NCBI GenBank assembly: GCA_054661495.1
Contig: BAAFSQ010000495.1
Span: forward strand, 1-5,195
Length of the DNA stretch: 5,195 nucleotides
Origin: Zygophlyctis sp. KS116
Lineage: Eukaryota > Fungi > Chytridiomycota
Direction of reading: 5' to 3'
In this document: positions 1 through 5,195 of the stretch, in pieces
Numbering within the stretch: position 1 is the stretch's first letter
Layout: every line of letters begins with the position of its first letter
Position numbers and translations under genes: made by a program
The notes under the pieces: model-generated
Seen by the model: the letters and a program-made list of their open reading frames with translations, nothing else
The model's database searches: none
Told to the model about the DNA's origin: nothing

Positions 1-240
1 TCTTGGAATTTCAATTAGTGGAATTTGATCTCACTAAATTATTTTTATTTTTCACAATTCTTTATTTTTCTTTTTCTAATCTTTAAATCAGCATAAGCAT
101 TATATTCAGGGTATATTCACCCCCAATTGAATAAATTTTATAGTAATATTTGATTGAGAATTTGTGTTTGATTAATAAATTTTTAGCTGCTGTGATTTGT
201 AGGATAATTTGAGAATTGAAACTAAGTTGATATTCTGTCA
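1..240 (-). repeat. 3' LTR (240 bp)
   Basis: Identical to 4956-5195 and immediately preceded on the minus strand by the purine tract AGGATAGGAGGAG. Its outer end coincides with the window edge. Confidence 0.95.
44..66 (-). terminator. Putative polyadenylation signals (AATAAA x2) in the 3' LTR
   Basis: AATAAA occurs on the minus strand at 66-61 and 49-44, downstream of the TATA as expected for R/U5. Confidence 0.45.
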
Positions 241-253
241 CTCCTCCTATCCT
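241..253 (-). promoter_or_regulatory. Polypurine tract (plus-strand primer)
   Basis: AGGATAGGAGGAG lies immediately 5' of the TG of the 3' LTR. Confidence 0.9.
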
Positions 254-395: not shown

Positions 396-3300
396 TCATT
401 GAAAATGTTGATTTTGCGATTTAAATTCATTGATTTCCCAATTCTTGATACCCATTAATTCTTTGAACTTATTATATTGATCTTTTGGTAGCGGTTTGGT
501 CATAATATCCGCTATCTGATCTTTTGTATTGATATAGATTAAATTCACAGTCTTATCTTGCACAGCCTCGCGTATAAAATGATATCTGAGAGCAATATGC
601 TTAATTCTCGGATGGTTTTTAGTAGAGACCGCCAAATATAATGCACCTTGATTATCACAATATAGAGGCGTCGGTAAATTATCAGCATATCCAATTTCTC
701 CAAGTATTTGTCTATAGTAAATTATTTCTTGTATTGCACTTGTAAGTGCTTGATATTCAGCCTGAGTACTTGATAAAGATACAGATCTCTGAGGATGTGA
801 GTGTGCACTGACTAGAGAACCATTATAAAACAAAACTCCTCCTGTCCTTGATAATCTGGTTTCTTTGCAATCAGCCCATGTAGCATCTGAATAACATTTT
901 ATTCCTTCATTATTTGATGGTCCAATTCTTAGAGAATGTTCTCTGGTGCTATACAAATAACAAAGAATCCTTTTTGCTGCGTTCCAATGTATATTAAATG
1001 GTTTTGCACAAAATTGACATAAAAAGTTTACAGCAAACATTATGTCTGGTCTTGTATGTCTAGATATGTAAAGTAAACTGCCCATTATAGCACGATATGG
1101 TACTGTTTCATCCAATTCTGTGTTAGTATTGATAGATTGATTCACAAAATCAGTAATCATAGGTGTGTTAAAAGTTTTAGTTTTACTTATTTCAAATTTG
1201 TTTGCTACAGCTTCAATGTAATCTGCTTGATTCATATATATGAATTGATTTTTAATTTTTAAATTGATTTTCAGATACAGGATATCACTTGTCTGTATTT
1301 TAATTTTGTATTTTAGTGTTAATTGTTTAATTATTTCATCTAAAGTTTTCTGATCAGACGCTGATATGATCCCATCATCTACATGAAAAGCGATAAAAGA
1401 GTTTTTCCTAAAGTATAGATTCCAATCTGACTTCGTTTTCTTGTATCCCATTTCTTTTAGTGTTTTCCATAGTTCATCATTCCACAATTTAGGAGCATCA
1501 TTTGATCCATACAACGCTCGATTAACTTTAAAAACATGTGTTGACTCTTTTACAAACTGTGGATGAGCGATTGGAATTCCAATATATAGGTCTCTATTCA
1601 TTTTTGCATTTAAAAATGCAGTTGAAACATCAATGAATGTAAATTTCCACTTGAGTGTTTGTATGAGACATAAAATCAACTTCAGGTTTTCTGTTCTGAT
1701 TACAGTTGCAAAAGTTTCCTCAAAGGATAGATCCACCTTTTCAAGATCTCCTCGTAGACACAATCTAGCCTTATAGAGTACCGGAGCTGGTTTTCGAGCA
1801 AACACAATTCGTGTCTTATTGATTTCTATTCCCTTGTCAAGTTCACATCTCTTTACCAAAGTGAATGTGTCTAATGCATCTAATGCACTATATTCTGTTT
1901 GTAATGCAGTCAACCATCCATTTCTCTCTCTATGATATAAAGCCTGTTTATAATTCCTCGGAACATCATCCACAAAGTGTATTGCATCACCTATAATGTT
2001 CGTGTAATCAAGATCTTGTTCTTTTTGTGAGTTCTTTTCTCCGGAACTTCTTAATCTTCTCGGTTGATTTATATCTATTGGCTCTTGTGTCCAAGTTTTT
2101 CCATTCAAACCAGTATCTCTATTTAAGACCTTTTGTTTAGATTGAATAGACTGATCATTATTTTCTACTCTAGGTGGTAATACGAGTCGCAATCTTGGAA
2201 TAAATGATCTTTGATGTTGATTTCCAGAAGTTGAATTGGCACTCCTGAGATTTAAAGTATTATTAGATTGATTTCTTTCAATTGCATTTTGCAATATATT
2301 AAAATCCTTTCTTTCCACTTCTTGTGCAAATGGAATATTGAATCTAACCTTTTTAATTATCTTTTGTTTTGGAAGAGGTGTCTCTTCTTCATCGTTTTTT
2401 ATCTCTTTGAATATATTTTCTTTGAAATCCACATGCCTAGATATTATTATCTGTTTTCCTGTCCAGATCAGATAAGAGTTTGAATGCTCTGAGTATCCTA
2501 TGAATCTGCCCATTTTTGCATTTGGATCAAACGTCTTTCTGTCATCCGAATGAATGTGGTAATAGCACAAGCAACCAAACACTCGTAAATAGTCAACCCT
2601 TGGTTTTCTGCCAAATATTAGCTCGAAAGGAGTCTTCGAAGTGTTCTTAGTGTTTATACATCTATTGTAGATGTAGTTTGCTGTCTCTACGCTTTTCATC
2701 CAAAAAGATTTTGAAATGTCTGCATGGGTAATCATTGATCTAGCCATTTGATTGATGATTCTTATCCTAGATTCAGCTACCCCATTAGAAGATTGTGATT
2801 TGGCTGATGTATATTGTTGTCTTATTCCATTTTCTTTTAAATATTCAGAAAAGTTTCCAAATATGTACTCTCTTGCCTGATCAGATCTTATACATTTCAC
2901 TCTCTTTTCAGTTTGTTTTTCAATCCATCTTCTAAATTCTATAAATTTTTGTAGTATTTCTGACTTCTTTTTAATTCCATATACTTGACCATATGATGAT
3001 GCTAGATCTACCATCACAATGTATCCATTATATCCTTCAATAGAAGTAATGTTGATTGGGCCCTTATAATCAATCACTATCATCTCCAGGATCTGATATT
3101 TTTGTCTTTCATACGGTATAAGATGAGTTTTATACTTGGATTTTGTTAGAGAACATGAATTGCAATTATTCATATTTTTATCTTTCAGTGAGAGTCCGAT
3201 AATTGCATCCGAATCACTCATCTTTGCTATTCTGTCATTTCCAATGTGTCCGAAACGAAAGTGAGCCAAAGAAAAATCAATAGGTGATTTTTTATAAGTA

Positions 3301-4916
3301 TAAAATATATGATCTGCAGAATTGGATATTTTTATACTATATAATAAATTTTCTTCTAAAGATGCTTGAAATAGTATTTTCCCTTGATAAGAAACTTGTT
3401 TTCCCTTTTTGACATTTTTTATTTCTAATTCCAGATTTTTATGTAGATAACCTTCAGATATTATATTAATTTTTGATGTTGGTACATAAATAGCTCGATT
3501 AAGCTTTAGAGTTGTTTGACCATTTTCTTGATCTGTAATTTTTATAATACAAGGTCCTTCCCCCAGGGCATCGCCATTAGTTTGAGTGTTTCCTTGAGTA
3601 TTATACGTACCAAGAAATTTTGGTATTTCATATCTTTGAAATTTTTCTGTTTCAAAGTATTTAAAGTTTCTGAGCAAATTTGTGGTACTACCACTGTCAA
3701 CTATGGCAGTTTCTGTTGTATCTCTTAAAGAATTCATCCCATCACACACTGAATCATTCACTAGCTTGGGATAATCAGTTTTGGTTATGAATATCTGATT
3801 TGGATTATCAGTATTTTCATTCAGTATCTGATTTCTATAGTCAGTATTGTTAATTATCTGATTTGGATGATCAGTATTATTATTAATTATCTGATTTGGA
3901 TAATCAGTATTATTATTAAAAGTCTGATCTGTGTGATCAGTATTATAGAAGTCTAAATAGAATGAATTATCCATATTATTATCAATGGCTTCTCCCACAT
4001 TATAAGGCCAATCAGCATCTTCCATTTGAAAACTGACCTTCTGTTCATTTTCCATGAGATAATTCTGTCTATCTTGAGGTTTATTTTCCTTGTTCTTATA
4101 GTCTCTTTTCTTTCTTGAGATTATGTCCCAGTGAGGCAATTTGATTCCGCTTCTTTTAGGCGAAGAACAATTATTTGGTCGATGTCCAAAACCTCCACAA
4201 TTGAAACAGATAAGATTTATATTAAATGATTTATCATCATTCTGAGATCTTCCATTATTCAAATTTTTGTTTATATCTTCATTAAAAGTAGTAAAAACAT
4301 CTGATCCCATTTTCACTCTTCTGCCCTTCAGGTAATTATCTAGATTTTTCATTTGTTTCAATAAATCTTCCAGTTTTACATTGTAATCCTCTTGAGCAAT
4401 CAATGGTCCAATTATAGGTCCATACTTGGTAGCTACTCCATTTATAAAGATCATTAATAAGTCCTTTTCTTGTATTTCTCCCCCAGCATCTTTCAACTTA
4501 AGATAATTTGAACTGAATCTATTGTGATAGACGTCTATATCACATGATTCCTCTTGGTTCATTTCTTCTAATTCTTTTCTGATCAATTTGATTGCAGAGG
4601 TAGAGTGATCTAAGACTTTCCCTTTAATCTTTGTTAAATTTCCATGAGCTGAGAGGCTCCACATGAAAATCCCTTTATATTCATCTGAAAGTGAATCATA
4701 TATTATTGACTTCGCTAGATCATCTTTCTTGACCCATTCGGACAATTTTCTTTCATAGTCTTCTATCCTATCATCAGGACTAGGTGCAGGTTGTCCAACA
4801 GCAGCTCCTAAAACAACTTCCTTAACCTGGAGGCGGTAGAAAGCTGATGTGATATCCTGTATCCATCTATGACCATTCTGATTGGTCAGAATTGTCACAT
4901 TTACGCTTGAATTCAT
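396..4916 (-). CDS. gag-pol: Gag-Pol polyprotein (Gag, CCHC zinc knuckle, aspartic protease, integrase, reverse transcriptase, RNase H), 1506 aa, single frame
   Basis: Motifs CFNCGGFGHRPNNC; IVDSGST; HFRFGH..CNSC; IDYKGP/RSDQ/NGVAE; YKARL, DVSTAFL, HVDD; YSDATW, SSTQAEY, CDNQGA, ADIMTKPL. The ATG has A at -3. Confidence 0.97.
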   Translation of the reverse strand: MNSSVNVTILTNQNGHRWIQDITSAFYRLQVKEVVLGAAVGQPAPSPDDRIEDYERKLSEWVKKDDLAKSIIYDSLSDEYKGIFMWSLSAHGNLTKIKGKVLDHSTSAIKLIRKELEEMNQEESCDIDVYHNRFSSNYLKLKDAGGEIQEKDLLMIFINGVATKYGPIIGPLIAQEDYNVKLEDLLKQMKNLDNYLKGRRVKMGSDVFTTFNEDINKNLNNGRSQNDDKSFNINLICFNCGGFGHRPNNCSSPKRSGIKLPHWDIISRKKRDYKNKENKPQDRQNYLMENEQKVSFQMEDADWPYNVGEAIDNNMDNSFYLDFYNTDHTDQTFNNNTDYPNQIINNNTDHPNQIINNTDYRNQILNENTDNPNQIFITKTDYPKLVNDSVCDGMNSLRDTTETAIVDSGSTTNLLRNFKYFETEKFQRYEIPKFLGTYNTQGNTQTNGDALGEGPCIIKITDQENGQTTLKLNRAIYVPTSKINIISEGYLHKNLELEIKNVKKGKQVSYQGKILFQASLEENLLYSIKISNSADHIFYTYKKSPIDFSLAHFRFGHIGNDRIAKMSDSDAIIGLSLKDKNMNNCNSCSLTKSKYKTHLIPYERQKYQILEMIVIDYKGPINITSIEGYNGYIVMVDLASSYGQVYGIKKKSEILQKFIEFRRWIEKQTEKRVKCIRSDQAREYIFGNFSEYLKENGIRQQYTSAKSQSSNGVAESRIRIINQMARSMITHADISKSFWMKSVETANYIYNRCINTKNTSKTPFELIFGRKPRVDYLRVFGCLCYYHIHSDDRKTFDPNAKMGRFIGYSEHSNSYLIWTGKQIIISRHVDFKENIFKEIKNDEEETPLPKQKIIKKVRFNIPFAQEVERKDFNILQNAIERNQSNNTLNLRSANSTSGNQHQRSFIPRLRLVLPPRVENNDQSIQSKQKVLNRDTGLNGKTWTQEPIDINQPRRLRSSGEKNSQKEQDLDYTNIIGDAIHFVDDVPRNYKQALYHRERNGWLTALQTEYSALDALDTFTLVKRCELDKGIEINKTRIVFARKPAPVLYKARLCLRGDLEKVDLSFEETFATVIRTENLKLILCLIQTLKWKFTFIDVSTAFLNAKMNRDLYIGIPIAHPQFVKESTHVFKVNRALYGSNDAPKLWNDELWKTLKEMGYKKTKSDWNLYFRKNSFIAFHVDDGIISASDQKTLDEIIKQLTLKYKIKIQTSDILYLKINLKIKNQFIYMNQADYIEAVANKFEISKTKTFNTPMITDFVNQSINTNTELDETVPYRAIMGSLLYISRHTRPDIMFAVNFLCQFCAKPFNIHWNAAKRILCYLYSTREHSLRIGPSNNEGIKCYSDATWADCKETRLSRTGGVLFYNGSLVSAHSHPQRSVSLSSTQAEYQALTSAIQEIIYYRQILGEIGYADNLPTPLYCDNQGALYLAVSTKNHPRIKHIALRYHFIREAVQDKTVNLIYINTKDQIADIMTKPLPKDQYNKFKELMGIKNWEINEFKSQNQHFQ
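470..900 (-). other. Ty1/Copia-type RNase H
   Basis: Catalytic residues D (885-887), E (756-758), D (654-656) and D (507-509) lie in YSDATW, SSTQAEY, CDNQGA and IADIMTK. Confidence 0.93.
930..1964 (-). other. Reverse transcriptase (RVT_2-like) plus connection region
   Basis: PRNYKQAL..W..A...E..AL, YKARLCLRG, DVSTAFLNA (D 1629-1631), ALYG, HVDD (1374-1385), YRAIMGSLLY..TRPDI. Boundaries are approximate. Confidence 0.93.
2455..3263 (-). other. Integrase: HHCC zinc finger (3263-3153), D,D(35)E core (D 3069-3071, D 2880-2882, E 2772-2774) and Copia GKGY-like region
   Basis: HFRFGH...CNSC; IDYKGP; RSDQAREY; NGVAES with 35 residues between D and E; LRVFGC..FIGYSEHSNSY. Boundaries are approximate. 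Confidence 0.93.
3690..3698 (-). other. Aspartic protease catalytic DSG (aa 407-409)
   Basis: AIVDSGSTTNL, with downstream YVPTSKINIISEGYL matching the Copia protease 'yVP....NLlS' motif. Confidence 0.9.
3762..3944 (-). repeat. In-frame 33-bp (11-aa) tandem repeat, about 5.5 copies, consensus NTDxPNQIINN
   Basis: Units start at 3944, 3911, 3878, 3848, 3815 and 3782 (spacing 33, 33, 30, 33, 33). Confidence 0.9.
4167..4208 (-). other. Gag nucleocapsid zinc knuckle CX2CX4HX4C (aa 237-250)
   Basis: CFNCGGFGHRPNNC followed by a basic stretch (PKRS...RKKRDYK). Confidence 0.95.
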
Positions 4917-4941: not shown

Positions 4942-4955
4942 TTCGACTGTTAATC
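4942..4955 (-). promoter_or_regulatory. Primer-binding site complementary to the tRNA-Asn(GUU) anticodon stem-loop (5' half-tRNA primer)
   Basis: The minus strand GATTAACAGTCGAA directly abuts the LTR. The plus strand reads TTCGA-CT-GTT-AA-TC, i.e. anticodon stem 5' strand, 7-nt loop with GTT anticodon, then positions 39-40. Confidence 0.8.
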
Positions 4956-5195
4956 TCTTGGAATTTCAATTAGTGGAATTTGATCTCACTAAATTATTTT
5001 TATTTTTCACAATTCTTTATTTTTCTTTTTCTAATCTTTAAATCAGCATAAGCATTATATTCAGGGTATATTCACCCCCAATTGAATAAATTTTATAGTA
5101 ATATTTGATTGAGAATTTGTGTTTGATTAATAAATTTTTAGCTGCTGTGATTTGTAGGATAATTTGAGAATTGAAACTAAGTTGATATTCTGTCA
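4956..5195 (-). repeat. 5' LTR (240 bp)
   Basis: Identical by eye to 1-240. On the minus strand it starts TGACAG, ends CCAAGA and is directly followed by the PBS. Confidence 0.95.
5091..5097 (-). promoter_or_regulatory. Putative TATA box in U3 of the 5' LTR (copy at 136-142)
   Basis: TATAAAA lies about 100 nt into the LTR, upstream of the AATAAA motifs. The AT-rich context weakens the call. Confidence 0.55.

Follow-up and report, generated by a model that had tools for sequence, protein, structure and literature searches.

A complete copia-type retrotransposon of the chytrid Zygophlyctis sp. KS116 is probably primed by a 5' half of tRNA-Asn(GUU)

The stretch of DNA analysed here, referred to as the window, is the entire contig C495 (5195 bases) of the 12.7-Mb, 1175-contig assembly of Zygophlyctis sp. 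KS116. It is a complete Ty1/copia-type LTR retrotransposon, lying on the minus strand. A repeat comparison within the window returned positions 1-240 and 4956-5195 as direct repeats that are 100% identical. Read along the sense strand, the element consists of an LTR, a 14-nt site, a 25-nt leader, gag-pol, the polypurine tract (PPT) GGATAGGAGGAG and the second LTR (Table 1). The Pfam domains follow each other in the reading frame as Retrotran_gag_2, Pol_BBD, gag_pre-integrs, rve, SH3_retrovirus and RVT_2, which is the gag - protease - integrase - reverse transcriptase/RNase H order of copia elements. The protease region is a barrel by Pfam, and a DSGS motif was seen in the frame. Both direct LTRs and a PPT before the 3' LTR are present, and a near-identical tract, AGATAGGAGGAG, holds the equivalent position in two related families of the same genome, L042 and L045. 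The contig stops at the LTRs, so any target-site duplication (TSD) lies outside the window.

Table 1. Features of the retrotransposon in the window (positions in the 5195-base contig).
Feature	Position	Strand	Description
5' LTR	4956..5195	-	240 bp, sense TGACAG...CCAAGA; 100% match to 1-240; starts after the PPT in the other copy, stops before the primer binding site
Primer binding site GATTAACAGTCGAA	4942..4955	-	pairs with host tRNA-Asn(GTT) 27-40, 14/14, three genes; unique in the window
Single gag-pol ORF, 1506 aa	396..4916	-	from the ORF list; Pfam domains in copia order
gag	4344-4763	-	part of the gag-pol ORF
CCHC knuckle	4167-4208	-	motif, in the gag-pol ORF
Protease region	3438-3704	-	part of the gag-pol ORF
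Integrase	2802-3344	-	part of the gag-pol ORF
RVT_2 reverse transcriptase, active site HVDD	1155-1868	-	part of the gag-pol ORF
Polypurine tract GGATAGGAGGAG	241..252	-	abuts the 3' LTR on its upstream side; read from the sequence
3' LTR, 240 bp	1..240	-	100% match to 4956-5195; outer edge is the contig end

The element is intact and probably recently active, the signs of activity being the identical LTRs and the open frame. Contigs from freshwater, estuary and lake metagenomes, covering at least three independent studies, also contain the element itself or variants about 98% identical to it. Furthermore, internal parts of the element recur at 100% identity in contigs of lake metatranscriptome libraries (runs X16-X20), which suggests transcription in nature, with DNA carry-over as an alternative. 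In an independent study, the primer binding site (PBS) is covered by one variant contig, and none among the changes listed for this contig falls inside the site.

Two further peculiarities of the contig were observed. Between gag and protease (3765-3977, minus strand; aa 314-384), about four imperfect 33-nt coding repeats encode an Asn/Asp/Thr-rich peptide repeat of the NTD-x-PNQI type. Both contig termini, window positions 1 and 5195, coincide exactly with the outer LTR edges. These limits are compatible with an assembly broken at the LTR tips by several identical copies or by unintegrated DNA. In contrast, contig C563 (L049) has a 77-nt terminal overlap that resembles a k-mer loop.

The sequence following the 5' LTR does not begin with TGG, which confirms the statement of the initial annotation that the element is without a TGG-type PBS. 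Plus-strand positions 4942-4955 read TTCGACTGTTAATC, or GATTAACAGTCGAA in the sense of the element, and touch the LTR directly. The same annotation had described this site as mirroring the anticodon arm of tRNA-Asn(GTT), and both the letters and the adjacency to the LTR are exactly as it gave them. The motif occurs once in the window (0.07 occurrences are expected by chance at up to two mismatches), and ARAGORN found no tRNA gene there. The host genome holds three tRNA-Asn(GTT) genes, and each of them contains the motif in its anticodon arm at 14/14, where an identity of 12-14 nt over tRNA positions 27-40 had been foreseen. Thus, the element has an internal, anticodon-arm PBS beside its 5' LTR rather than a complement of a tRNA CCA end.

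In the 74-nt tRNA-Asn, the motif spans linear positions 28-41, which are canonical positions 27-40 given one extra base in the D-loop. This stretch takes in the 5' strand of the stem and the seven-base loop, whose anticodon is GTT, and reaches two bases into the 3' stem strand. The neighbouring tRNA bases, G26 and G41, are left unpaired by the PBS of the window; therefore, the putative primer is a 41-nt 5' fragment ending at C40. Besides the 14-mer, no match to tRNA-Asn longer than 8 nt was found in the first 700 bases of the element.

The motif is not a peculiarity of this one element. Its 11-base core occurs at 26 sites genome-wide, compared with 6 for a control. Of the 26, 3 lie in the tRNA genes and 16 at LTR junctions, and the remaining 7 appear random. 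tRNA-Asn is the only type of tRNA gene among them. At the 16 junctions, the window included, the LTR-side sequences are mutually unrelated, yet the first base of the motif adjoins U5 at all 16 and the motif is exact (14/14) at 15. The exception is a diverged relative on contig C64, in which a G replaces the last A and could still form a G-U pair with U27. The limits of the motif are also sharp: the preceding base is A or G at 16/16 junctions and never the C that would pair with G41, and the following base extends the pairing to G26 at only 1/16. Conservation among copies and families, which the initial annotation had named as a check, is therefore found at 16 junctions belonging to very different families.

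Downstream of the motif lie copia-type polyproteins that are 24-53% identical to that of the window. L038, L042 and L045 are the closest (48-53%), seven further motif-bearing families share 24-31%, and two motif loci are without coding capacity. The window element and at least a dozen others in this genome thus appear to start copying from a tRNA-Asn 5' half. A scan of metagenomes for the PBS, with tRNA-gene contexts excluded, gave a copia polyprotein downstream in 0/81 among the matches listed; chance matches dominate there, so the scan is no gauge of how widespread the motif is.

Some further loci deserve a brief mention. On a GC-richer metagenome contig (L084), two 2.6-kb units that are 83-92% alike and lack a copia ORF retain the Asn-arm 14-mer beside TGTCAA/TGTAAA (196-276 and 2772-2852), and they may be non-autonomous elements with an Asn-half primer. 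In L051 (around 1576-1596), after an LTR end reading ...AACAACA, a partial duplicate (GATTAAA) of the first seven bases of the PBS immediately precedes the full site. A 224-nt repeat pair in L036 was considered as an LTR element and rejected, as it has no LTR-element features.

Halves of other tRNAs seem to serve relatives of the element elsewhere. The best database relative of the window polyprotein is 36% identical, and the PBS was read in nine relatives from other assemblies. In 6/9, an iMet-half site follows the LTR end directly, in the register that the initial annotation had proposed for the window, namely the loop plus 2 nt, ending at C40. The metagenomic relative L052 has a Lys-CUU-arm site, one base from the core of the window. 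Another metagenomic relative, L053 (31% identical), carries at positions 54-67, after an LTR end reading ...TTAGCA, an arm-shaped site with the anticodon GTT and different stem bases, possibly an Asn-half PBS suited to the tRNA-Asn of another host. The PBS of the ninth relative is not clearly readable.

In the host genome, two variants of the iMet arm were found at 0 and 4 sites, respectively, so iMet-half elements are rare or absent there. The Lys-CUU-arm core GATTAAGAGTC occurs at 25 sites, compared with 5 for a control; some of these are surely tRNA-Lys genes, and the remaining ones could be Lys-half-primed elements. An Arg-UCU-type core was found at 13 sites. Two of them are tRNA genes, a match of 15 bases is reached only at L056, and the others look random. 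L056 (C2:32599-32609, minus strand) matches the anticodon arm of the host tRNA-Arg(TCT) over these 15 bases, after an AT-rich, LTR-like end, and may represent a Tca2-style Arg-half PBS in the host genome.

With a misplaced LTR boundary, GATTAACA would count as LTR sequence, giving the LTR the canonical CA end, and a different site would be the true PBS. Such a shift would be compatible with the accepted LTR end of the window, ...AAGA, which is non-canonical compared with the usual ...CA, and with the contig stopping at the LTR, which leaves the 3' flank outside it. Nevertheless, we regard it as very improbable in view of three other families of the genome, L042, L045 and L047, which are represented by complete elements with identical LTRs and with their flanks present. 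In all three, unrelated DNA and not the motif follows the 3' LTR. The 5-bp TSDs CTTCA (L042) and TAAAT (L045) set the LTR as TGTTG...TGTCA, with the motif beginning at the very next base; a target-site duplication was also looked for at the flanks of L047, and none was seen there. The TSDs of these sister families place the edge one base ahead of the motif, which is missing from the 3' flanks; the motif therefore lies outside the LTR. In the window, the repeat halts exactly at the motif, and the LTR 3' edge (...CCAAGA) rests on these contig and repeat limits and on an identical junction in C64, where the LTR tail has diverged to about 77% identity. The two LTR tips also have T....GAAT.TC in common, in the motif-adjacent register.

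The other copies of the window's own family are limited to C64 and C279, whose LTRs are truncated or rearranged and show no LTR 3' end beside a flank. The copy on C64 (L035; 2954-3054 and 7397-7634) is a rearranged, dead copy of a diverged relative: its 5' LTR is truncated, its PBS reads ...TCGAG, and its 3' LTR breaks off at about 160 bp, where an inverted LTR start is joined to it. Two contigs from public runs (X11 record 1 and X4 record 16) extend 86 and 19 letters, respectively, past window position 1. The proposal of the initial annotation that a tRNA-Asn half is the primer is thus supported by the agreement of the anticodon arm in all host tRNA-Asn genes, by the restriction of the motif to the inner side of the LTR in L042, L045 and L047, and by its conservation among families; the window copy itself ends at the LTR and offers no flank of its own to read.

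Half-tRNA priming of the copia/Ty5/Tca2 type is the best reading of the site, because of the 14/14 match, the 16 junctions, the edge fixed by TSDs and the lack of a complement for self-priming. A chance resemblance, a different tRNA whose arm is similar (such as Lys-CUU, which differs by one base) or self-priming in the manner of Tf1 are hardly credible in its place. The anticodon arms of ANN-decoding tRNAs are indeed alike, and the Lys-type core is enriched in the genome too, but Lys reaches 13/14 at best where Asn reaches 14/14. Chance is excluded because the motif recurs at so many junctions, and the excess of its core over the control points the same way. Self-priming of the Tf1 kind needs a segment of the 5' transcript that is complementary to the PBS; the longest PBS complement in the LTR is 6 nt, and this candidate was rejected. 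The motif might also be conserved for a role other than priming, such as packaging, dimerisation or tRNA capture, with another primer in use. As the link from the site to priming is drawn from sequence, there is some room for such a role, but it is improbable: the motif sits exactly in the PBS slot, with its first base against U5 throughout, the iMet-half PBSs of relatives (copia/Ty5 type) occupy the same slot, and no TGG-type or self-priming site was found.

The complementarity of the PBS to tRNA-Asn, its position, its register and its cross-family conservation are matters of direct observation. Judging from these letters, minus-strand synthesis is very probably primed by a 41-nt 5' fragment of the host tRNA-Asn(GUU), ending at C40 and pairing through positions 27-40 with the 14-nt PBS. 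In copia-type half-tRNA priming, the 3'-OH comes from a 5' fragment of a tRNA, and the last base of the LTR is where minus-strand strong-stop DNA begins. For the window element, a postulated agent would make a likewise postulated cut in the 3' strand of the anticodon stem of tRNA-Asn, leaving the 41-nt fragment. The fragment would then anneal to the PBS directly after the 5' LTR and, instead of the whole tRNA, would provide the 3'-OH. During plus-strand synthesis, the PBS would be recopied from the primer. G26 is usually m2,2G in eukaryotic tRNAs, and the sharp 14-nt length of the site may reflect plus-strand copying of the primer that halts before this modified base. The modified t6A37, and possibly Q34, of tRNA-Asn fall within the paired stretch; this counts against such pairing, but equally so for the known iMet and Arg cases.

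It may also be that the anticodon arm of the whole tRNA-Asn anneals first and that the cut at 40/41 follows, made by the RNase H of the element or by a host nuclease in the particle, so that no pool of pre-existing halves is involved. This is a variant of the half-tRNA explanation rather than a contradiction of it, and we consider it a serious possibility, a little short of an even chance. The sequence data fit both routes alike. Three or more copia groups, which do not form one clade, end exactly at C40, and either route could yield such an end. If the cut follows annealing, replication would be independent of the tRNA-halving pathway of the host.

Internal-tRNA priming is established for Drosophila copia and yeast Ty5, both of which use an iMet half. 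Like these two members of the genus Hemivirus (Pseudoviridae), the window element has a PBS that abuts the 5' LTR, an anticodon-arm pairing that ends two bases into the 3' stem, and a single gag-pol ORF with the copia domain order. It differs in its primer, which is tRNA-Asn and not tRNA-iMet, and in its LTR end, ...AAGA where copia and Ty5 have ...CA. The PBSs of Candida albicans elements correspond to internal stretches of tRNA-iMet or tRNA-Arg-UCU (PMC4139406). The element Tca2 of this yeast, with its internal fragment of tRNA-Arg-UCU, and the window element are both fungal copia elements with an internal PBS for a non-initiator, ANN-decoding tRNA, albeit for Arg-UCU in one and Asn in the other. 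Tca2 has a stop codon separating gag from pol (PMC2194720), whereas the window element has one open frame.

Other half-tRNA primers have been assigned in filamentous ascomycetes and in plants. The PBS of the FunCo1 copia elements, whose hosts are filamentous ascomycetes, corresponds to an internal stretch of tRNA-Lys (PMC5445492). Their core, like that of L052, is one base from the core of the window, with the anticodon CTT for GTT, and the primer is Lys instead of Asn. Among the plant copia lineages, Osser, Bryco and Gymco-II use a half tRNA-Met and Bianca a half tRNA-Ile (PMC6317226). In this account, half-tRNA priming is restricted to copia elements, and the identity of the tRNA was switched more than once. 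These lineages differ from the present one in their plant hosts and in their tRNAs.

The initial annotation did not recognise the tRNA-Asn half as a primer of characterised Hemivirus-type elements, and this overstated its novelty. Kojima 2024 (PMC10886601) named tRNA-Asn-GTT as a primer of Helenus elements in rust fungi (Pucciniales), and reported complementarity to a tRNA anticodon loop for most PBSs of fungal Helenus elements. In section 3.6 of that paper, one primer appears two times as 'tRNA-Asp' and a single time as 'tRNA-Asn-GTT'; of the two names, Asn is the one that agrees with the deposited sequences. In the sequence file of the paper, the internal regions of Helenus-3_PGr and Helenus-2B_PSt open with the 14 PBS bases of the window, preceded by a C. 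Text and sequences together therefore put a tRNA-Asn primer with the same PBS on record, computationally, for rust fungi. Helenus-3_PGr, Helenus-2B_PSt and their presumed autonomous partner Copia-6_PHord resemble the chytrid set in their copia-type partners and 5-bp TSDs. The hosts are basidiomycetes, whereas ours is a chytrid, and the Helenus families are small and non-autonomous. Furthermore, the extra C of the annotated Helenus internal region, which matches tRNA position 41, is absent at 16/16 chytrid sites. The assignment of the Helenus primer is computational only, as is the present one.

The relationships among these elements were explored with an RT-RNase H tree of 19 rows, which is unrooted and thinly sampled, includes relatives without named references, and uses PBSs as read in this analysis. 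The clade of the window, L050, L052 (Lys) and L053 form one well-supported group, and the other Asn families fall beside or inside the iMet group. An AU test rejects the ten Asn rows as a single group (p = 1.2e-5), and well-supported branches force at least two changes of primer. Such an unrooted, thinly sampled tree fits an ancestral Asn primer with losses and several gains of Asn alike. One-base steps between near-identical arms, as between Lys-CUU and Asn-GUU, would offer an easy route for primer switching, because the PBS would be rewritten from whichever primer was used. A more far-reaching idea, which we put forward only tentatively and hold to be rather unlikely, is that the host decides the primer. 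Two to three copia lineages in this chytrid would each have switched to the tRNA-Asn 5' half, with their nearest kin elsewhere using iMet or Lys halves, as a specific 41-nt fragment would come from the cell or from the particles and the PBS is rewritten from the primer used. If this were true, how tRNA halves are made and how a primer is chosen could be tested directly in one organism.

The window element is a chytrid addition to the known half-tRNA-primed copia elements, and neither its mechanism nor its primer is new. What is new here is the chytrid host, and the many diverged lineages (24-53% protein identity) that have a common primer and do not form one clade. PBS finders restricted to tRNA 3' ends miss or mis-annotate such elements. 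With the chytrids, a basal fungal lineage joins the hosts of half-tRNA-primed copia elements, and in this genome a whole resident population of diverged families appears to use one non-initiator tRNA half. One primer across lineages that are not a clade gives a handle on primer switching in LTR elements and on the question whether hosts supply specific tRNA fragments.
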